A stretch of DNA of 64,000 nucleotides from Setoptus koraiensis (GCA_048013815.1 CM106585.1:4712001-4776000), one strand, 5' to 3'; shown: positions 4,736 through 45,132, counted from the stretch's first letter. Notes: generated from the letters alone by a model not told the origin. A program made the numbers and translations.

Positions 4736-7700
4736 TATGCAAAACTCATACTGACACAAGCATCCAAATGAATATTACTAACAACAACGCTCGGCGGCTC
4801 CGTGTGTCGACCACATGACGCCATTGACAGCGACAAAAAACAAATCCCGACCAACACAATACACGCCTACAGTATCCATAGTGCGTGATATATTGAGTGG
4901 GGCCCGCTCGAGCCAGCCATCATTGTCAGTCCGAGAGATTTCCTTGTTCAACCGGCATTTTGAGCCAAATATTTTCAAGAACAAAATAACCGAAAAAATT
5001 TATTTGTTTATTCACTCGAATATTTTCAATATTTTCTAACACAACTTTAAAGTTGACAAGCCCACACACGCCAAATGGCACACAGCTTGCCACACAGTTC
5101 CTAAGTGTCAAAGCCTCGCAATCACGAACCGAATCGTGTATTTTTATCAACAGATCCCATTCAATCTATCCGAGCCATATTGTCGATATTCCTCGCAAAT
5201 GGTGGCCTCGCAAAGTTCCAACTACTCGAGGGCGTTTTTCGGTCACCGAAACACCCAAAATTCGCCCCAAGATATGGTCACGATGTTTTCATTTCAGTGC
5301 CCAGATAATTTTTTTTTTCTTTCAATCACAACCAAACCTAAATTGTGTAATGTTGAGGGCGCAAACAAGAAAAAATGTCTCTATTGGCAGCTGGTGGCAA
5401 AACAAGTCCGCCAGTTGTTTCGAGCACATTCCGTTGTTGCTTGTCCCGCAGCTATCTTTAGTGCGACATGGACGCTATAACACTGATTCCAATTGAGGGA
5501 TCCGTCACTGTTCTGTGTGAGGCCTCCAAGGCAACGAGTTTCCTAGCGCTTCTACTGGCTCTAAAATTTGTCTCCATCTTTGCCCTTATATCCACGGGCA
5601 AAATCCTCGATTTTTTCAGAATGCGCACCAAATCAATAGATCAAAGAAAGCATTGTTGACGACATCAAACGGTCAAAAAATCCGGTCAGCTTAATCTTTG
5701 GACAATTAAATTTACAAAACAAAAGCCTCACGTCATGGTTTTTCCCTTAGTTGCGGGCTGGACAATGAAAAATAACAGAGCACGCTAGAGGCTGCGATTT
5801 TTCGCCGCAGCTCATCAATCACTCGTGTTCTTGCAAAAATTGATGCCATCTACTACACATCTCAGGCCCAGCGTCTGATGTGACTGCGCTCACGAACGGT
5901 CCGTGAGCCTACCAGATGTCGTCAGGCAAAGTATTTAAAAAGAATTTCTTTTCCGACCACGAGCATGGGATTTCTCACCCAAAAACGAGCTTTACGCATG
6001 GCTCGACTTCCGAACAGTAGATGAAAAAAGAAAGCAAAATCAGCTCTTTTTTCGAGAGTCCACTAAAATGATTCATAGCGAGGGGCCATTCCTTGCGGAA
6101 ATCTTTTCATTTTTGGCTCTGTTGCACTTTTTTCGGTGAGAAATTTTGTTTTTTATCCGATTAGCGAGATATATCACAGAAATCATTTCTTTCTTTTTCT
6201 GGCGACAATAATAAAAGGTTAAGAGCGAATGAAAATTTCCCGGCTGGATCCAGCGTCTCTGTGTTCGGGGCTAACATCGGCAGCGATAAACACAACGACA
6301 ATAATTATTGGATGAACTGACTAGATCTTAGAGACTAAACGAAAAACAAATTTGAGGCAAAAAGGAAAGAGTTTATGAGAGAAAACAGAGAGAGAAAAAT
6401 ACTCGATCATCATTGAAAATGGATGCGTGTGTTTACGATGCTGACAATGGTCCATGATCACGACAACAGTTTCATGTGTATCCATGCCAAGATAGTATCC
6501 GAGCGACGACGACCAAGATGAGAGGCTTACCTGCCCTCGACACTAACACTTTTGGTGGGTTCATGTGTGCGCAAATATCGCCATGTCGGCTGGAACCAAC
6601 TCGATTATTATTATCCCTTAATGCGAGCACATATTTCTAATATCGTGCACTTTGTTAGATGGCGGCTCCGTGGCGAGTTGTTATTGGGGCGATGATAGAA
6701 CGGATGAGAGAGTGATTGCGAGTGAGAATAGAGTGCGTGCAACCTAAATATCACGTTGAGCCGAAGGGGGCTCTAAGCGGGTCAAATCTGGCCAAACTAA
6801 CAAACTGGATGATGAAATCATTGAAAATAAGCTCATCTGGCCAACTTAATCGTTGGCCCGCTTGCTCTCTCGCTAGCTTTCCAAGATCTAGATGGAATTT
6901 CGCTCGTGTGTGTGTGTGTATTCATTGAGTAAATACGCGCAACAACAAAAATTTCTACAATTGATTGAGCTTCAATCATCACCGAGGCTCCCTCGTCGAG
7001 CTCTCTTATCTGCACGCTCACATGTATTAATGGTATTACGCGCGCCATGAATTCATAGTTCATCCAATAGAGTGACGACAAATGCCGCGATGCTCCCAAA
7101 TACACACACACACACACACACTCACATAATATATAATAATATTAACATAATTACACATACTATATAGTATGTACTATTTAGTGCAACACGCATATAGCTC
7201 ACTAGATGCTACATGCTAGACAAGGTGAATCGAGGTTGATTTGCATAAACTGTCTAATGGCTCGAGCATGTAGCTCGCCAGCCGTGAACTTGCTCGAGCA
7301 ACGGGCCCATTTGCTCCCTTTGGCCAGAGTTACCTCGATGTTATTCATTCATCTTATCTTGGTGGCTGTCTCGCTCGCTGTTGGCGTTGTCTAGTCAGGG
7401 CGAGCGATACTTGTTCACTATTGGCACATGATTGGCATCTCACAACCAATCTAAACCATTTGACCCCTTTGCCAAGGCTCTCGGATGTATATGGCGTAGT
7501 GCATAGTCTCGTATTCATCTGTGCGTTCCATTGATTTTCGTCGTACGGCACTGGGGCCCGTATAAGCGACCACCTGTCACTTGAAATCGTGCATAAAGTA
7601 TCGAGTCGCGCCTCACTTGCGAATTGCGCAAATCGCAAACTGTAAATGCCGAGCGCTCGTGAGTTATGCCACGCGCCACCATTCTGGCAACCTTAGCCCG

Positions 7701-34550: not shown

Positions 34551-35096
34551 CTTTCTGTTCTTTCAGAAGATGGTAACAGAAATCCACGGCTTCAATTCTT
34601 CTCTGCTGGCCTAACAATGTAATCATGACGTAGCCTGTCTAATTGAGTTGTAACCCTAAAAGTTGTTTCAAGGTAGTTCGTTGTGGTTGATTGATGGTAC
34701 TCTCCACCACAACGAAGTTTAGAAATTCTTGTCATTTGCATGAAAACGCTGAAAAACGCTTATTAGGATTTGAATTTACGCAAATGAAAAATAAGCGCTC
34801 TCTTGCCCACTTGTGAGATACATGCACGTACTTAATTCATTGGGAGCACCAATGTTCATTTAACAGCAGCAGCATCACCATTGTTCTCTGTCATCAGTGT
34901 GCATTCATTTTTAAGTCGTGATGATTATTTATTCATAATGTCAACAAAACAAATATCATTATTATCATCATTCATGGTAAATTATTAATTATTCCCTTGT
35001 TATCTAATCGTTTAATACAACCCACCGGACAACACTGTACAACATCGATATTGTTTTTACTGATACCATTTTCGCTTATTTTTTCTGGGGAAAAAC

Positions 35097-36407
35097 ATGG
35101 ACAAGGCACCACAACAACAAAAACCAGATATTACTTGTTTACAATTCTTTGAGCAGCTCGAACAACAAAACAATTTACACATAGATACAACTAATAATGG
35201 ACCTAATGTTGCCAATCAATCAACGCAACAACAACAACAAAATACTAGATCTACAACAAATAATAATCAAATTAATGATGACGGCCGCAGCACGTGCCTT
35301 AGGAGATGCGATCACAATTCAAAATTAAGCACCGCGTTATCACATATGCTTCAGAAGGAATTTATGGTGGATGTTACAGTTTCCTGTGATGATGGACAAC
35401 TAAATGCTCACAAACTAGTGCTAGCGGCTTCGTCATCATATTTTCGTACCTTGTTTCTCAAAAAGCCAAACACACATCATTATCCTATTATTGTCTTGAG
35501 GGACATAGCCTTCATGGACCTCAAGACTGTCATAGACTTCATGTACTACGGGGAGGTTACAATCACATCCGAACGATATGATTTAATTATGAAATGCGCA
35601 ACTTTTCTATTGGTCGAAGGTATCTCAAATTCATTTAACAATGTTGTCGCTACCTCACAACAAGACGACACATCGCAATGCAAGATGACTACATCATCTT
35701 CAACATTGATGCAGGATATGTCAGTTGGACAGGACAGCACACTACTTAGCCTGGACACTACTATGTATAGGGCCCAGTTGAGCGAACAACAAAATCCTCC
35801 AATTAAATCTGATGGAAATGATGCAGCTTGTCATAATGATACTGTTTGTGGTGGCCAATCAAAAGATCAAAGGATTTTGCACTATAATTTCAATCCATTC
35901 AATGAACATTTTAGAAAACTGAGAGAGCACATAGTCACAATAACTGAAGAAAATAAGCGACTAAGTGCAAGGCTCGCGTTACTAGAAGCAGGAAATGACG
36001 CCAATCTAACTAGAAAAATTGATGATGCTATTGAACATTCACAGGAATTGGAAACTCTCAGAAAGCAGGTCATGGAGGCTGAAACACGGGAGGCGAAAAT
36101 AATGGCCTCATTCAAAAAAACAAGCAAGGATTTTCGAACTATGTGCTACTTATTGACAGGTTTCAGAATAGATGCGCTGAAAGAAAGAAAATATAGATTG
36201 TCTAGCATGTACGCGGAATCGCCTGATGATGTACTTTATTTTGAGACCAGTCCAGATGGAAGTGTACAATTGCTCCAAAACGGATATAGTGAGAGGTTAT
36301 CTGAATATGTTGAGACGTATTTACAGCGAGCTGATAGTTTTCCAGCCTTCTTGGCGTCAATAACGTTGGATCTATTCAAGGCTTCGACAATGATCAACAT
36401 AAAATAA
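35097..36407 (+). CDS. MAD1: BTB(POZ)::MAD1 C-terminal chimera, 436 aa, single ORF
   Basis: aa about 73-176 is a tramtrack/broad-type BTB (DVTVSCDDGQLNAHKLVLAASSSYF...VIDFMYYGEV). From aa 259 the protein matches MAD1: MAD2-binding motif RILHYNFNP (human KVLHMSLNP), coiled coil, and CTD (FRTMCYLLTGFRID...YRLSSMYAE...DSFPAFLASITLDLF). Confidence 0.85.
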   Translation: MDKAPQQQKPDITCLQFFEQLEQQNNLHIDTTNNGPNVANQSTQQQQQNTRSTTNNNQINDDGRSTCLRRCDHNSKLSTALSHMLQKEFMVDVTVSCDDGQLNAHKLVLAASSSYFRTLFLKKPNTHHYPIIVLRDIAFMDLKTVIDFMYYGEVTITSERYDLIMKCATFLLVEGISNSFNNVVATSQQDDTSQCKMTTSSSTLMQDMSVGQDSTLLSLDTTMYRAQLSEQQNPPIKSDGNDAACHNDTVCGGQSKDQRILHYNFNPFNEHFRKLREHIVTITEENKRLSARLALLEAGNDANLTRKIDDAIEHSQELETLRKQVMEAETREAKIMASFKKTSKDFRTMCYLLTGFRIDALKERKYRLSSMYAESPDDVLYFETSPDGSVQLLQNGYSERLSEYVETYLQRADSFPAFLASITLDLFKASTMINIK

Positions 36408-36458
36408 AAACATCAAATTATCAGTAGCCATGTACATATATGGAAAAGAAATAGTTGA

Positions 36459-38501
36459 TCAGTTAATAATACTGAACTGAGTATCATTGGGTTGCATGGA
36501 TTTGTTATATTCTTCAAGGATCGCTTGCAAGTTTTTTGCCTCTTTGATGACAAAGTTGACATTGGCTATGACCCAAGTGCTTAGCTCATTAATATAAGGG
36601 TCAATCATTGGTTTAGGCATATTAAGTAGCTCTTTGAATAACGAGGGCCACACACTTGTTGGACATCCCTTAAATGTACGATCTACAATCCAGAAATTGT
36701 TTTGTGTGTCCTTTGCGGGCTCTATTTGCTCCCCGAAAAACATTCTGTGTATACAATCCAATGCTCCGAACCAATCTATCTCATTCGACCATGGTTTAGA
36801 GTCATGCATCTGGCAAATCATCATGTCACTGAGTTTACTTTCAAATCGACTACCTTCAGGTAATAGTCTCATATCCATGGCACGATCAAAGCCAACTAGC
36901 TTTATTATGGAAGTTCTCTCGTTGATTTTTGTTATGTCATCCTTTGATGGGTTATTGGCTATGAAGAGATTATTTATATTCAAACTCATGTGAATTATAT
37001 CACACGAGTGTATTTGCTTAATTACCTGGAGTAACTCAAGTGTGACGAGAGCAGCTATAGATTTGGGGAACTGCTTGTGTAAACTGTCGCAAGCGTCGAG
37101 AAATCTTGACAGAGGTGCCAAGCCGGGGTACTCATCTATTAGTACACTACCATCTTTATAAAACACAGCAGGGTTCGCATTCATGACGGACAACTCTATA
37201 TCCGGCTGACACCGTTGTTTGACTAATCTACGATGCAACTCTTTACAAATGTAGAATAGCCAGTCGTTGGCTGGTTGGTCGATCTTGATGCAGCATACTT
37301 TCAACGGTACGATATTCATTGTAGATTCATTTGATTCATCATCTTGCAGTAAGGTTGCTCCATACAATCGATTGGCAGAAGATATATCCCGATCTATCAG
37401 ATACTCATCATTACCAGCTCTAATGAGGGTATGATTTAACTTGATTTTCGGTAAGTTTCTGGAGTATCTAAATACCCCTTGTCTGGCGATAGGCTCATTT
37501 AAACAGGCAAGTAAGCGATTATAGGATGTTGGATCTGCGGGATCAATTGGTCTTTCTGGTAGCAATGGCGCTGGTGTGATTTGGTTAGTTTTTTGAGCTG
37601 TGCCAGGAGTTGCGCTCAAGCCAGAAGAAGACGACGAAGATTTACTGTTGCAATCTCTACTTGTTTCTACAATGGGGCTCAACTTGAGAGTGGGCGAACC
37701 TCCAAGAGAAGGACGAGACAAGCGCCGGCTAGCTATAGAGTTACGTTTTTCGTTTCCATTATCTTGTCTTTTTGCCTTTGGTGTGGATGAGTCAGCGTTG
37801 TCTCTCAAATATTGTGACTGGTCAATCGGATAAGTCAATTTATCATTGTAGGTTGTCGTTTGGTTGGAAATTGTTGCACACCAGAGATCCTGGACGGCTG
37901 TGTGCGATGTTTCGTTGAACTCTAGACATTGTGTTGTTTGAAAACATTGTGGCAGAATAGATAGTCGGTTACTTTGTGTACCAGAACCATTTGGAATGGT
38001 GTTGGAGTTTTGTTGGATTATTTGCTGTGACGATTGTTGCGGTGGCAATGATTGTTGTTGGCTTAGTTGTTGCTGCAGAATTTGTTGTTGTTGCATCAAC
38101 AATTGCATCTGCTGAGTCAAGAAATCAATTTTTTGCTTTTGATCTTCATTCTCTTTTTTCATCTGCTCGTATCCCTTCTTCAATTGTTCGTTCTCTCTGA
38201 ATACTTCATCTTTGCGTCTCTTCTCTAGAATTAGCGTTTTTGACTCAGCGAGTCTCTTGAATCTCAATTCTTCAAATGACAACTCAATACCATAGCACCC
38301 GCCTGGATATAGAGTGCGCGTATCAACGAAGAATCTATGTGACGGATTCAGGTTTTCGTGTATGAAACGCGGCGCCGGGTCCTCTGGCTCAATGTTTCTA
38401 TTCTCTTTTTTATCCTCTGGTGGTGCTGGTCTGCTTGTTGCTGTTTTGGCCGGTTTTATCAGTCCATCATCAACATAAATCTGGAACTTTGCTGGTGCCA
38501 T
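36459..38501 (-). CDS. BubR1: BUB1/BUBR1 (MadBub)-family checkpoint protein, TPR-less, with predicted pseudokinase; 680 aa, intronless
   Basis: ABBA-like FQIYVD (aa 6-11), KEN (aa 32-34), GLEBS (LYPGG...LSFEELR), B56-docking LSPIVE, and a BUB-type kinase fold (IKIDQPANDWLFYI; GSVL; KPWSNEIDWFG) with HGD changed to HMS and DLG changed to GFD. Confidence 0.88.
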   Translation of the reverse strand: MAPAKFQIYVDDGLIKPAKTATSRPAPPEDKKENRNIEPEDPAPRFIHENLNPSHRFFVDTRTLYPGGCYGIELSFEELRFKRLAESKTLILEKRRKDEVFRENEQLKKGYEQMKKENEDQKQKIDFLTQQMQLLMQQQQILQQQLSQQQSLPPQQSSQQIIQQNSNTIPNGSGTQSNRLSILPQCFQTTQCLEFNETSHTAVQDLWCATISNQTTTYNDKLTYPIDQSQYLRDNADSSTPKAKRQDNGNEKRNSIASRRLSRPSLGGSPTLKLSPIVETSRDCNSKSSSSSSGLSATPGTAQKTNQITPAPLLPERPIDPADPTSYNRLLACLNEPIARQGVFRYSRNLPKIKLNHTLIRAGNDEYLIDRDISSANRLYGATLLQDDESNESTMNIVPLKVCCIKIDQPANDWLFYICKELHRRLVKQRCQPDIELSVMNANPAVFYKDGSVLIDEYPGLAPLSRFLDACDSLHKQFPKSIAALVTLELLQVIKQIHSCDIIHMSLNINNLFIANNPSKDDITKINERTSIIKLVGFDRAMDMRLLPEGSRFESKLSDMMICQMHDSKPWSNEIDWFGALDCIHRMFFGEQIEPAKDTQNNFWIVDRTFKGCPTSVWPSLFKELLNMPKPMIDPYINELSTWVIANVNFVIKEAKNLQAILEEYNKSMQPNDTQFSIIN

Positions 38502-38859: not shown

Positions 38860-39815
38860 CAGGGTGTCTAGAGCAAGCGATACAGCCTTCCGCAGTGCAT
38901 TCTCTGCATAAAAACAATGCATGCTGCGTAAAATTTTTACAAAGTGCACCCATGTTTCACGGAAGGTACACGAGAGGCGCTGCTCACATTTTGCGAATGA
39001 GGAGAATTCAGTTCAGCGTTGCCCTCGCGGACCTTTCGCAAACTAGGCTGGACGCCACATGCATTCTCTTTTGTTCGCTTTCGTTTGTTTTTACTCCCTT
39101 GAAGAATCTGCCGCCAGGGAGCCATTTTTGATTGCACGTTGGTGCGAATTGCATACGCTGATAGCGTCTCAAACGACTGCATAGTTGGCGATACTACCTC
39201 ACAGCAAGACAGAGCAGAAGCCAACGAAAGCGAATTCGCCGAGATAACCATACTGCGCTTTTTGTTCCCCTTACACTGTGAAGTAACAGTGATGTTCGCT
39301 TGTGTGCGCTGCTTCCACTTTACTTGCGACACCCTATAACAAGGTGGAAGAGAGAGAGAGAAATATAAATAAACCAATATGATCTTCATAGGGCGAACAT
39401 ATGTGCTGGATTGGCGCAAAACTTGTGTAGGGTGTGAGGTGCAAGTAGTCAAGATACAAAGGCATCTGTGCAGCACAGCAGCACAGACAGTCCCAATGTG
39501 TAGTATTGTTTGCCCGATGCAATGTGGCGCCAAACGTGCTCAGAATCTCGCTAATGCACGAACTGTGCGATGCAAGCAAGCGCAGTGAGGGTGAGATTTT
39601 TCTGATGTACCTACATTGGTTTGCAAAAGAACCGCGAGGGCGGCGCTGCACTGCATTTTCCGTTGAGCAAACGTTGAGCAGCGCCTCTGATGGATCTCTC
39701 ATAAAACATCGGTGTGCTTCGGATAAATCGTGCAGTGTATTTGTGCAGAAAATGCACTGTGGAAGGCAGCGTAGCATGATCTGCAGAAATTTGACTACTG
39801 GCATGTCACACCCTA
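38860..39815. mobile_element. Old non-autonomous TIR element (about 956 bp) with long diverged subterminal inverted repeats
   Basis: TA-CAGGGTGT at the left and ACACCCTA-TA at the right. About 38880-39050 is a diverged reverse complement of about 39620-39775 (for example gccttccgcagtgcattctctgca vs gccttccacagtgcattttctgca). Confidence 0.6.
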
Positions 39816-41860: not shown

Positions 41861-42792
41861 ATTATACATATACATAAATTTTTGTTTGTAACGTAGATTT
41901 GAAAGGCCGCGATCGTTATGATAGCAGTTCCGCTAATCTAGAAATGGCAACAACAACAAAAAATCGACAACAACAGCAGCAGCAGCCATGAAAGGATTGC
42001 CTAGAGGGGCGCTTGTCAATGTTACTGGTGTTACGCTGTTACAATATGGAACGAGCAGTTGCGCGTGCGATTACTGAGAATTACGTCATTTTCATTGAAT
42101 GGCATGTCGCAGGTGCACGCGGAGCTTTTTCATTCATTCGGTTATAGTGGTAGTGTGTGTGTGTGTGTGTGCGCGTGTGTGTGCGTGTGTGTGTTTGTTT
42201 GTGCAGACTGGACCTCATAGTAGGAAGGTGGCGAGATCCGTTATTCAATAGTTGTTATATAGACTGGAATGAAGATACTGCTGACCTTCACAGTACTTAG
42301 TAGGGACCAAACCATCTAGAGCTGCTCCTTTGTGCCCATTAATCTAGATCGATAAGGATGGGGTGCATAAGATGTTGCTGAGTGTACCATAGAAATTCAT
42401 GTACATATTGTTATCGGTAGTAGAATGGAGTAGCGAGAATGAGATAACAACTATTCTCAATCATATCATCCTATGTGTATAAAGTTGGCAAGGTATGTGA
42501 TGACCGCCATTAGTTGACCATCGTCGCACAAATAATAATAATAATAATTCCATTGTCAGCATCGGCATTAAAAATAGTCAAACGCAAAAAAATAGCACTG
42601 TTTTATATCAAGATAATATTATCGAGGTTCATACAAACGATGATCCTTAATCTGGCAACATTCGACATAATGCAGCACTGATAGGACATTTGACGAAAAG
42701 TTTCAATATAATATATAATATATTGCACTGCGTTATTGCTGATATTGTTGCCGTTGTTTCATTATAGCTTATTATTGTTAAAAGGCCATCTA

Positions 42793-45132
42793 ATGGCCGC
42801 AACCATATCGCATCCGTTACGTTTGTCAGTATCATCATCAATGGTGACAAAATCAACAGTATTAGCAACAGCAATCACAAGATATATTGCAACTAATTTA
42901 TTACACTCGATTCTGTCAATTGGCGCTATCATTCTACTGGCCAATAGTGTGAGCAACATCCATCGCGACACTGTCAGCTATTCCGGTTTGCATCTACATC
43001 AGCCATCACTAATACCATCATTGGGCTTGCTTATCCCATCAGTGTCGGCTGAAAGCGTCAACCTAGAATATGTTGAGCCACTAGAGGAATCAAACGTATT
43101 TACATCATCATTTTTGGTCCGATTGAACGGAGATGGACACAATCAGGAGACCGTGCACGAGATCGCAAAACGAAACGGATTTGTTAATTTAGGTCCCGTG
43201 GCTAGCTCTAACAATGAGCACCATTTCTATCATAAGGACTTAAAGCCTCGCAATAGGCGTAGTATATACCATACAAAGAAATTAAAGAAAGATCCCCAGA
43301 TACAAACTGTAATTCAACAGCCTGGCTTCAAGCGAGAAAAACGAGGCTTCAAGGCTCTGCCGATAGAGGCGGCACAATTGATCGACACTGATAAGATTGA
43401 CCGACACAACAACAACAAAAACAACAATGCGTCAATGATTAAACTATTAGCTAGCCAAGATCCAACTGATCCATATTTTAAATATCAATGGCCACTGAAA
43501 AATGTTGGCCAAAATGGCGGCAAGCCCCGATTGGATCTCAATGTAAAATCGGCTTGGGCACAGGGCTACACAGGAAAGAATGTTACCACGGCCATTATGG
43601 ACGACGGAGTTGATTATAAACACTTAGATCTGAGAGAGAATTACAACGCAAAAGCCTCTTATGATTTTAGTAGCAATGATCAATATCCGTATCCGCGTTA
43701 CACGGACGATTGGTTCAATAGTCACGGTACCAGATGCGCGGGTGAAGTGGCCTCAAAGCGCGACAATGGCATTTGTGGCGTTGGCGTGGCCTACGATTCT
43801 AAAGTGGCCGGCATACGAATGTTAGATCAACCTTATATGACAGACATTATTGAGGCCAATTCAATGAGCCACGAGCCCAACCTAATCGACATTTATTCGG
43901 CTTCGTGGGGACCCACCGACAACGGAAAAACTGTTGACGGGCCCAGAAATGCTACAATGCGCGCTATAGTCAGAGGAGTTAACGAGGGTCGCAACGGCAA
44001 GGGCAATATCTATGTTTGGGCCTCTGGCGACGGTGGCCAAGACGACGATTGCAATTGTGACGGCTACGCAGCTAGTATGTGGACAATTTCAATTAATTCT
44101 GCCATTAACACTGGCCAGAACGCTCATTATGACGAATCTTGTTCTAGCACACTGGCGTCAACATTCTCCAATGGAGCGAAAGATCCCCACACTGGCGTTG
44201 CTACCACCGATCTCTATGATCGTTGCACCCAAACGCATTCGGGCACATCGGCAGCGGCGCCCGAGGCGGCGGGCGTCTACGCTCTGGCTCTAGAGGCCAA
44301 TCCGGATCTTACCTGGCGTGATATACAACATCTGACCGTGCTGACATCGAAAAGAAACTCTCTCTATGATGGCAAGGGTCGCTTTCACTGGAACATGAAT
44401 GGCGTTGGCCTAGAATACAACCACTTGTTCGGTTACGGAGTGTTGGACGCCGGAGCTATGGTTTCATTGGCGAAAAATTGGAAAACAGTTCCAGCTAGGT
44501 ACCACTGCGACGCGGGCACTCTCAACAAAACCTATGAGATCCCATCAAACAGAACAGCTGTCATGCACATCGATACAACAGCCTGTCAGGGCACCAAAAC
44601 GGAAGTTAACTACATCGAGCATGTTCAGGCTATCATAACATTGAATTCGACGCGACGTGGCGATGTCACATTGTTTTTGACTTCGCCCATGGGCACTAAA
44701 TCGATGATATTGAGTAGAAGACCGAACGACGACGATCATCGTAACGGATTCGTTCGTTGGCCATTCATGACCACGCAAACTTGGGGCGAAAATCCGCGTG
44801 GTAGATGGATCTTAGAGGCTCGATTTAGCTCAGGTGAGCGAGATAACAACAAGAACAAGAAGGATGACGGCAGCAAAAAGTTGAGCAGTGCTGCAACAGC
44901 AGCAAGCAAAACTTTATCATCGTCAGAGAATGAATACAATAACAAATCGTCGGAATTGTCGCCACAACAGCAGCCGACAAAGCAAAAACAGCAACACGGT
45001 ATGATTAAAGAATGGAGATTGATAATACACGGAACAAGTGAACCACCCTACAAGGGTTTGACTATATCTGATAAGAACTCTAAGTTGGCCATTGTTAAGA
45101 AGGCACATGAGGATTCATTGATAAAAAAATAG
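42793..45132 (+). CDS. PCSK2: Prohormone (neuroendocrine) convertase 2, amontillado orthologue; intronless, about 779 aa, start codon uncertain
   Basis: Propeptide ending KREKR; catalytic DDG, NSHGTRCAGEV and HSGTSAAAP; the PC2-diagnostic Asp in WASGDGG; P domain with RRGD. Confidence 0.95.
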   Translation: MAATISHPLRLSVSSSMVTKSTVLATAITRYIATNLLHSILSIGAIILLANSVSNIHRDTVSYSGLHLHQPSLIPSLGLLIPSVSAESVNLEYVEPLEESNVFTSSFLVRLNGDGHNQETVHEIAKRNGFVNLGPVASSNNEHHFYHKDLKPRNRRSIYHTKKLKKDPQIQTVIQQPGFKREKRGFKALPIEAAQLIDTDKIDRHNNNKNNNASMIKLLASQDPTDPYFKYQWPLKNVGQNGGKPRLDLNVKSAWAQGYTGKNVTTAIMDDGVDYKHLDLRENYNAKASYDFSSNDQYPYPRYTDDWFNSHGTRCAGEVASKRDNGICGVGVAYDSKVAGIRMLDQPYMTDIIEANSMSHEPNLIDIYSASWGPTDNGKTVDGPRNATMRAIVRGVNEGRNGKGNIYVWASGDGGQDDDCNCDGYAASMWTISINSAINTGQNAHYDESCSSTLASTFSNGAKDPHTGVATTDLYDRCTQTHSGTSAAAPEAAGVYALALEANPDLTWRDIQHLTVLTSKRNSLYDGKGRFHWNMNGVGLEYNHLFGYGVLDAGAMVSLAKNWKTVPARYHCDAGTLNKTYEIPSNRTAVMHIDTTACQGTKTEVNYIEHVQAIITLNSTRRGDVTLFLTSPMGTKSMILSRRPNDDDHRNGFVRWPFMTTQTWGENPRGRWILEARFSSGERDNNKNKKDDGSKKLSSAATAASKTLSSSENEYNNKSSELSPQQQPTKQKQQHGMIKEWRLIIHGTSEPPYKGLTISDKNSKLAIVKKAHEDSLIKK

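Follow-up and report, generated by a model that had tools for sequence, protein, structure and literature searches.

A streamlined tail-to-tail MAD1-BUB gene pair in the eriophyoid mite Setoptus koraiensis that probably retains its docking contact

In a stretch of 64,000 nucleotides from the eriophyoid mite Setoptus koraiensis (GCA_048013815.1 CM106585.1:4712001-4776000; hereafter the window), two checkpoint genes, one encoding a MAD1 and the other a BUB1/BUBR1 protein of the MADBUB type, end tail to tail 51 bp apart. We read the locus as a streamlined form of both genes, kept under selection, in which the docking between the two proteins would be retained and the adjacency would be a by-product; we put the probability of this reading at roughly 0.6. 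The initial annotation of the window had instead proposed that each protein has lost the motif by which it binds the other. Its coordinates, its spacing and its reading of K-I-M at the RLK position of MAD1 all hold, while its statement that BUB carries no CD1 motif was not confirmed. Overall, three results speak against a reciprocal loss: the RLK variant occurs throughout the group, the half of CD1 that contacts MAD1 appears to be kept, and the GSPTL sequence taken for the CD1 site is the flank of a different motif, the KARD.

Two constrained genes at one locus

The basic layout of the locus is as follows.

35097..36407, plus strand: single-exon open reading frame (ORF) of 436 residues, a BTB::mini-MAD1 fusion (ORF call; the frame stays open across the junction in the related species L005)
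36459..38501, minus strand: single-exon ORF of 680 residues, a BUB1/BUBR1 (MADBUB) pseudokinase without TPR and KEN1 (ORF call and family alignment)
36408..36458, no strand: spacer of 51 bp between the two stop codons (sequence)

The coordinates and the spacing of the two convergent ORFs were verified on the sequence, with the MAD1 stop codon TAA at 36405-36407 on the plus strand and the BUB stop codon TGA at 36461-36459 on the minus strand. L005, which comes from a separate assembly (run SRR33593474), shows the same convergent layout with a spacer of 58 bp, so the two genes are tightly linked in both species; its BUB protein is 89% identical to that of the window. The start of the BUB ORF is preceded by an in-frame stop four codons before the ATG, and the alignment with more than 30 full-length relatives spans 98% of the protein. 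Introns are few in the extremely compact genomes of eriophyoids, and the mites are described as holocentric (PMC7738191), which bears out the chromosomal context suggested earlier; the published assembly of S. koraiensis amounts to 47 Mb in two chromosomes (PMC11920263). The single-exon genes and the tiny spacer are thus what such a compact, intron-poor genome leads one to expect.

We estimated the ratio of nonsynonymous to synonymous substitution rates (dN/dS) from the window and L005, for which dS is about 0.6. In MAD1 the ratio was 0.11 from the MAD2-interaction motif to the C-terminus and 0.40 in the linker. In BUB it was 0.074 for the whole protein, 0.03 for the middle region and 0.055 for the kinase fold. 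Because these values show purifying selection, both genes are functional. The fusion junction is moreover bridged by contigs from other runs. Together with the ORFs that stay open in a second species, the dN/dS values and these independent contigs rule out a pseudogene or an assembly artefact. Domain and motif comparison, to which we now turn, confirmed that both genes are strongly remodelled.

The RLK variant of MAD1 is shared across the group

The MAD1 part of the plus-strand ORF matches positions 483-660 of the 661 positions of the Pfam model MAD (PF05557; 1e-43), and residues 315-432 align with the C-terminal domain of human MAD1 (PDB 4DZO/7B1F) at 3e-27 in phmmer with one small gap region. 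Three elements were placed in it.

35871..35897, plus strand: MAD2-interaction motif RILHYNFNP, residues 259-267 (MAD1 alignment)
36039..36392, plus strand: C-terminal coiled-coil stem and RWD-like head, residues 315-432 (4DZO/7B1F alignment)
36096..36104, plus strand: K-I-M at the RLK position, residues 334-336 (alignment to human R617-L618-K619)

The MAD2-interaction motif lines up with KIVHMTMNP of snail, KIVHLTKNP of fly and RVIHLKNNP of another mite, with H, N and P nearly invariant, and it matches the consensus [KR][IV][IVL]H....NP of fly, snail and mite MAD1s. This motif, the coiled coil and the RWD-like head are what the protein has in common with human MAD1 (MAD1L1/Mad1p, PF05557; fragment 485-718). 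The head is about 40% identical to human residues 598-718. It keeps the equivalents of human R630 and R650 as R347 and R367, and an S-T pair stands at human T716, whose Thr is nearly invariant in the MAD1 alignment. By contrast, the long N-terminal coiled coil (about 480 residues in human) is gone, a BTB domain occupies the N-terminus, and RLK is replaced by K-I-M.

The loss of the N-terminal coiled coil is not peculiar to the window. Among its MAD1 relatives, sixteen are complete ORFs of 240-290 residues, each built from a short N-terminal helix, the MAD2-interaction motif, the coiled coil and the RWD head; taken together, the mini-MAD1s of relatives measure 221-290 residues, typically about 245. 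Several of them begin merely 200-300 bp from the adjacent gene, which leaves no space for upstream exons, so these proteins are truly short. Judged by these ORFs, the mini-MAD1 is the norm across the eriophyoid group.

The same holds for the RLK position. The window lacks the RLK motif, since K334-I335-M336 faces human R617-L618-K619, and the alignment to the human C-terminal domain agrees with the initial annotation that this reading is non-canonical. K-I-M is shared by the window and its close relative L005. Other eriophyoid mini-MAD1s read K-I-L at this position, with KML once, TIL once and KLL in a metagenome copy. In the mite protein position 617 stays basic and position 618 aliphatic. 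Full-length canonical MAD1s also deviate, with K-M-K in two tephritid flies and R-L-M in snail, and RLK is missing from the MAD1 of C. elegans and X. laevis (PMC8391104). In the human complex, R617 binds phospho-T461 of BUB1, L618 packs against F470 and I471 of CD1, and R630 contributes to binding, while K619A weakens the affinity for CD1 only from 3 to 10 uM (PMC8391104). To call K-I-M a lost motif is therefore not warranted: K-I-L or K-I-M is group-wide with its basic first position kept. Because the variant occurs in mini-MAD1s that have neither a BTB domain nor a tail-to-tail neighbour, it is older than both and tied to neither.

Some relatives depart from the simple mini-MAD1 build. A single ORF of 455 residues (P0001, L012:1594-2961) holds two tandem MAD1 units, both with K-I-L: a complete mini-MAD1 is followed by a Ser/Thr-rich linker and then by a second coiled-coil-plus-head unit. 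On two metagenome-derived eriophyoid contigs, mini-MAD1 is locally duplicated beside BUB (L006:942-1706 and 4964-5683, with L016 being the same contig; L014:4890-5582 and 5724-6410). One of the L006/L016 copies is much more diverged, with K-I-S at the RLK position and TYPLLL in place of the conserved SFPAFL. A MAD1 ORF of 387 residues at L015:1239-2402 reads K-I-L at the RLK position and has an N-terminal coiled coil of about 210 residues. In length it may stand between canonical MAD1 and mini-MAD1, unless the ORF is just a last exon.

The hydrophobic half of CD1 probably survives in BUB

The element at issue in BUB is the following.

37872..37913, minus strand: putative CD1-derived motif ETSHTAVQDLWCAT, residues 197-210 (family alignment, bridge sequences, canonical-CD1 HMM)

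Its C-terminal hydrophobic half, residues 202-210 (AVQDLWCAT), appears to be kept, whereas the SPT..TK half is gone. Across the eriophyoid BUB family the motif reads S.......[ST]V[VL].D[LM]W..T, and the window lineage shows an extra deletion of eight residues, relative to other eriophyoids, between the conserved Ser (S199) and the helix.

We arrived at this assignment through an exhaustive profile search for BUB homologues, in which the 1,296 hits formed a graded series. Canonical CD1 is plain in vertebrates (SPTVHTKEALGF[IL]MDMF) and in abalone (SPTVNTQEALKVVRGMF). The CD1s of the mantis shrimp Oratosquilla (SPTVNTKQAMCMIKDLWNGSL) and of the horseshoe crab Tachypleus (TPTANMQQAISEAWDLWNGTL) bridge these to the mites, where the site reads ..SKG[AT]LS[LM][MV]R[DE]LWNGTL in oribatids and ..NDAPSVV.DLW.NT in eriophyoids. 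The SPT switch is already gone in oribatids. We then built a hidden Markov model (HMM) from 17 canonical CD1s alone. This canonical-CD1 HMM matched the DLWNGTL motif of oribatids at 1.5e-5 to 8.5e-4, and in 9 of 18 eriophyoid proteins its best placement, a weak one, fell on V.DLW. An HMM of the eriophyoid motif in turn matched the oribatid site at 0.02-0.06. A direct comparison of the eriophyoid HMM with human CD1 was not significant, and the link runs through the arthropod bridge sequences. Residues 197-210 thus appear to be the equivalent of CD1, with a significant link for oribatids and a weak, positional one for eriophyoids.

GSPTL (residues 268-272) was also considered as the CD1 site and was rejected: the canonical-CD1 HMM scores it negatively, and it sits in the KARD block as the upstream flank. 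The earlier statement that BUB has no CD1 consequently stands for the canonical SPT..TKxA switch, which is absent, and probably fails for the hydrophobic half at residues 202-210.

The distinction between the two halves has a structural side. The half that is kept corresponds to human F470-I471..M474-F475, which packs on L618 and on the head of MAD1, and the half that is lost corresponds to the phospho-switch S459-P-T461 (PMC8391104). Changing MFQ of human CD1 to RRK abolishes MAD1 binding, and the MFQ equivalent in the mite is L-W-x; an unphosphorylated human CD1 peptide does not bind MAD1 at all (PMC8391104). A comparison of RLK, CD1 and linkage across mites, which had been named as the check on reciprocal loss, thus turned out against it: K-I-L/M predates both the BTB domain and the tail-to-tail order, and half of CD1 can probably be traced.

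The rest of BUB: predicted docking motifs kept, TPR and catalytic residues lost

Outside CD1, six further elements were placed on the protein.

38469..38486, minus strand: N-terminal ABBA motif FQIYVD, residues 6-11 (family alignment)
38250..38336, minus strand: GLEBS-like predicted Bub3-binding motif ending in ELSFEELRF, residues 56-84 (family alignment)
37623..37700, minus strand: KARD-type block GSPTLKLSPIVETSRDCNSKSSSSSS with LSPIVE as a predicted LxxIxE site for PP2A-B56, residues 268-293 (alignment)
36570..37541, minus strand: BUB1-type kinase fold without catalytic residues, residues 321-644 (PDB 4QPM)
36969-36992, minus strand: catalytic loop HMSLNINN (human HGDIKPDN)
36873-36896, minus strand: GFD at the DFG position (human DLG)

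Neither the N-terminal TPR domain (Mad3_BUB1_I, PF08311) nor KEN1 gave a Pfam match in the window BUB, which begins at the ABBA motif. In the family F..I of this motif is invariant and Y and D nearly so, and it aligns with the ABBA downstream of the TPR of oribatid MADBUBs. The GLEBS core E.SFEE[IL] is kept in the family and is also present in oribatid, mollusc and mammalian proteins. The family architecture includes a coiled coil as well. The KARD block GSPTLKLSPI[VT]ETSR..NSKSSSSS is invariant in 16 of 16 family members and is homologous to the KARD of mammalian BUBR1, KKLSPIIEDSREATHSS. A KEN box at residue 32 was rejected as a functional element, being absent from the 89% identical L005 protein and from every other member of the family; the window BUB has a second KEN, which falls inside the coiled coil. 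The only named eriophyoid relative, "BUB1" of Aceria tosichella (UniRef), belongs to this same TPR-less family.

The kinase fold was recognised from the BUB1 kinase domains in the PDB, including 4QPM, at 5e-24 over residues 321-630. HxN/S and GFD occur in all eriophyoid members, while outgroups keep H[AG]D.KPDN. With both the HxD..N loop and the aspartate of DFG/DLG gone, the window BUB is, by its residues, a pseudokinase. In oribatid MADBUBs, which include a close relative of an Oppiella nova protein, KEN1 and TPR precede the same ABBA motif and the catalytic loop is of the active type. Compared with these homologues, the eriophyoid BUB has been shortened by about 265 N-terminal residues and has lost its catalytic residues.

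Two proteins, P0090 and P0091, form the nearest outgroup of the eriophyoid BUB clade. Both lack the TPR and a DLW-type CD1; the kinase loop is of the active type, ABBA occurs three times, and L[ED]TI.E forms an LxxIxE site. Given these proteins, the loss of TPR may be older than the formation of the pseudokinase.

Among known systems, the mite BUB shares with vertebrate BUBR1 (BUB1B) the GLEBS, the ABBA, the KARD with LSPI.E and a Ser-rich tract, and a constrained C-terminal pseudokinase. It differs in having no KEN1, TPR or conserved KEN2 and in carrying a putative CD1-derived helix, which BUBR1 does not. The mite pseudokinase arose independently of that of BUBR1, because P0090, P0091, the oribatids, Tachypleus and Oratosquilla keep H[AG]D.KPDN. 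Closer still is the unduplicated arthropod MADBUB (Oratosquilla oratoria XP_076055680 and the oribatids), in which ABBA, GLEBS, coiled coil, CD1 (a putative one in the mite), KARD and kinase fold follow in the same order, and which has the KARD block SPI.E[TC]SRE.(x)SK/SS and the probable CD1 core DLW(NG)T in common with the mite protein. Unlike the mite BUB, these MADBUBs have KEN1, TPR and an active-type kinase, and those of crustacean and horseshoe crab also keep the [ST]PT switch.

A lineage-specific BTB::MAD1 fusion

The N-terminal part of the MAD1 ORF has an origin of its own.

35079..35736, plus strand: segment copied from a BTB gene, comprising an 18-nt leader, the N-terminus and the BTB domain (paralogous contigs)
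35340..35642, plus strand: BTB/POZ domain, residues 82-182 (Pfam PF00651, 2e-21)

The best solved relatives of the domain are ZBTB17 and NAC1 (both 2e-16), BCL6, BACH1 and KBTBD4. Contigs from four runs contain a second sequence, at equal depth, that is about 90% identical to 35079-35736 and unlike the sequence past 35736, which places the fusion junction after nucleotide 35736 (residue 213). Because this paralogue matches only up to that point, the fusion was born by copying the leader, the N-terminus and the BTB domain of a BTB gene. Neither blastn nor tblastn found the donor or paralogue in the window. Conserved proteins of relatives that combine a BTB domain with two C2H2 fingers (about 300 residues) are about 55% identical to the BTB part of the window.

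In L005 the ORF likewise runs from the end of the BTB domain through the junction (..GQDSTL..) into a MAD1 with K-I-M, and the searches made found this architecture in no lineage beyond the window and L005. The BTB domain takes the place of the short N-terminal helix of the mini-MAD1s. Compared with BTB-zinc-finger proteins of the ZBTB type, with which the fusion shares the BTB domain and whose solved relatives ZBTB17, BCL6 and BACH1 are dimeric, the zinc fingers have been swapped for the functional core of MAD1. As every other lineage has a BTB-less mini-MAD1, parsimony suggests that both the BTB domain and the tail-to-tail order are derived.

The two genes are often neighbours in changing orientation

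The arrangement of BUB and MAD1 at related loci varies.

Window: tail to tail, 51 bp
L005: tail to tail, 58 bp
L001, L002 and L011: head to tail, about 200-265 bp, with TIM upstream of BUB
L007: head to head, 292 bp
L006: MAD1 on either side of BUB
L014: BUB, an ankyrin-repeat gene, then two tandem MAD1s

Linkage was found at 8 of 12 informative loci, L009 being left out of the count; L008, L010, L012 and L013 had no linked partner within the flanks at hand. The neighbours of BUB in relatives, namely TIM, aconitase and ferritin, are absent from the window, and only BUB and MAD1 are common to the window and the relatives' loci. For two given genes among about 6,000, a rough count puts chance adjacency near 3 in 10,000. 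The adjacency nevertheless persists between loci whose BUB proteins are as little as 36% identical and whose other neighbours are not the same. Overall, the two genes lie side by side far more often than by chance, though not everywhere, and they change orientation readily, which is what small inversions and local duplications would produce in a compact genome. The BUB tree supports the eriophyoid clade and the pairing of window and L005, each at 100/100 and both on long branches; its backbone is not resolved, so the order of the orientation changes follows from parsimony only.

The convergent order had also raised the idea of an antisense overlap of the 3' ends. One candidate signal lies at the end of MAD1.

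36403..36408, plus strand: AATAAA overlapping the MAD1 stop codon (candidate signal, sequence only)

Given this AATAAA, the MAD1 transcript may end inside the 51-bp spacer. On the minus strand the first canonical AATAAA for BUB stands at 36240, within the MAD1 coding region, and a 3' overlap is possible, chiefly of the BUB 3' untranslated region over MAD1. As a conserved mode of regulation, this overlap finds no backing in the relatives: the convergence is lineage-specific, and their genes stand head to tail or head to head.

Other features of the window

Upstream of the BUB start, positions 38870-39782 hold an imperfect inverted repeat with three arm pairs of 43-62 nt, which are 73-81% complementary and separated by about 575-810 nt. 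Long ORFs without Pfam hits lie on top of it, and it resembles a foldback or transposon remnant. Positions 42736-45132 encode an ordinary furin-type proprotein convertase in a single ORF of 798 residues (S8 pro-domain, Peptidase_S8, P-domain).

Discussion

In the reading that we favour, BUB would still reach kinetochores through Bub3 and would recruit PP2A-B56 through its KARD. Its CD1-derived helix would still dock on the head and stem of MAD1 at K334/I335, R347 and R367. This docking would lack the SPT switch of Cdk1/Mps1 or employ another phospho-site. The main role of the BTB domain would be to dimerise the MAD1:MAD2 template in place of the lost N-terminal helix, and the convergent 51-bp order would have arisen incidentally, through a local inversion in a very compact genome.

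Several points weigh against this reading. The CD1 assignment in eriophyoids runs through transitive and individually weak matches (iE 0.13-6) and through architectural position. The equivalent of pT461 is missing, and as the unphosphorylated human peptide shows no binding, the contact has perhaps been lost or become different. In the window lineage, the eight-residue deletion, the replacement of L by M in MAD1 and the gain of BTB could together mark a real change of the interface. In at least 3-4 sampled species the linkage is broken, so the pair can evidently do without it. The genome may also hold a Mad3-like gene with KEN1 and TPR, or another MAD1, outside the window.

These points can be assembled into other explanations. 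The kinetochore checkpoint might be largely dismantled, leaving BUB as a Bub3-bound scaffold for PP2A-B56 in attachment and mini-MAD1 as a partner of MAD2 off the kinetochore, with an adjacency that is neutral microsynteny shuffled by small inversions. KEN1, TPR, the catalytic residues of the kinase and the N-terminal targeting region of MAD1 are indeed all lost, no KEN box is conserved (that at residue 32 is missing even from the 89% relative), the KARD and the pseudokinase are the most constrained parts, linkage is broken in several species with variable orientation, and a comparable rewiring is known from nematodes (bioRxiv 10.1101/088161). However, the MAD2-interaction motif, the T716 equivalent, the ABBA and, it seems, the hydrophobic half of CD1 have been kept, all of which belong to checkpoint catalysis rather than to the control of attachment. 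Neutral shuffling also has to account for an adjacency, expected by chance at about 3 in 10,000, that reaches down to 36% BUB identity. On balance, we regard a dismantled checkpoint as unlikely. Quite unlikely, in our view, is the explanation closest to the initial annotation, by which the contact is lost on both sides and MAD1 reaches chromosomes otherwise, for example through its BTB domain, which could pair with the parental protein (roughly 90% identical) or a different BTB protein. The absent SPT switch, without which human CD1 does not bind MAD1, would fit it, as would the close BTB paralogue, which could heterodimerise, and the coincidence of the CD1-motif deletion, the step from K-I-L to K-I-M and the BTB gain in the window lineage alone. 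Against it, the RLK variant and a shortened CD1 are found in all MAD1/BUB pairs without BTB, so that the supposed loss would be older than the BTB domain. V.DLW..T and the MAD1 head are strongly conserved, with dN/dS of 0.03 in the middle of BUB and 0.11 in the MAD1 C-terminal domain, and the GSPTL argument falls with its misassignment.

It might also be that the two genes are accessory paralogues, and that a canonical BUB1/Mad3 with TPR, KEN1 and SPT-CD1 and a MAD1 with RLK run the checkpoint from elsewhere. MADBUB genes are often duplicated and subfunctionalised, and a short Mad3-like protein could slip through word-based searches, which are length-limited. No search returned an eriophyoid-like TPR protein or a long MAD1, although the genome beyond the window was not searched, and the BUB1 of Aceria tosichella, the only named eriophyoid one, sits in the TPR-less family. 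We consider this explanation highly improbable. Slightly less so, and still very unlikely, is a bolder form of the favoured reading: a minimal two-gene checkpoint module, kept adjacent, with a phosphorylation-independent contact and with the BTB domain tethering the MAD1:MAD2 template to chromatin through the parental BTB-zinc-finger protein. If true, it would mean signalling along holocentric chromosomes without the canonical receptors.

In nematodes, MAD-1 binds the kinase domain of BUB-1 through its coiled coil. The BUB-1/MAD-1 pair of C. elegans resembles that of the mite in its lost or degenerate CD1, its non-conserved RLK, its holocentric chromosomes and its rewired checkpoint (PMC8391104; bioRxiv 10.1101/088161). 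In C. elegans, unlike in the mite, MAD-1 still has its long coiled coil, BUB-1 retains both the TPR and kinase activity, and the two genes are not known to be neighbours.

Few parts of the spindle checkpoint are as conserved as MAD1 and BUB1/BUBR1, and the rules for their domains (KEN1-TPR for inhibition of the APC/C; SPT-CD1 with RLK for recruitment of MAD1) derive from yeast and vertebrates. What looks like the loss of a short motif in a single sequence can turn out to be a misplacement: the putative CD1 of this BUB surfaced only once bridging taxa were aligned. Under our favoured reading the eriophyoid locus would be a natural minimal version of the pair. What remains of MAD1 nearly coincides with the fragment that serves biochemists as its catalytic core, and BUB keeps ABBA, GLEBS, what appears to be half of CD1, KARD and a pseudokinase, pointing to what outlasts extreme streamlining in a reportedly holocentric animal. 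The BTB::MAD1 fusion amounts to a natural experiment in which the dimerising N-terminal part of MAD1 has been swapped. That two interacting checkpoint genes should repeatedly lie side by side is unusual for animals, which makes their co-regulation a testable idea.

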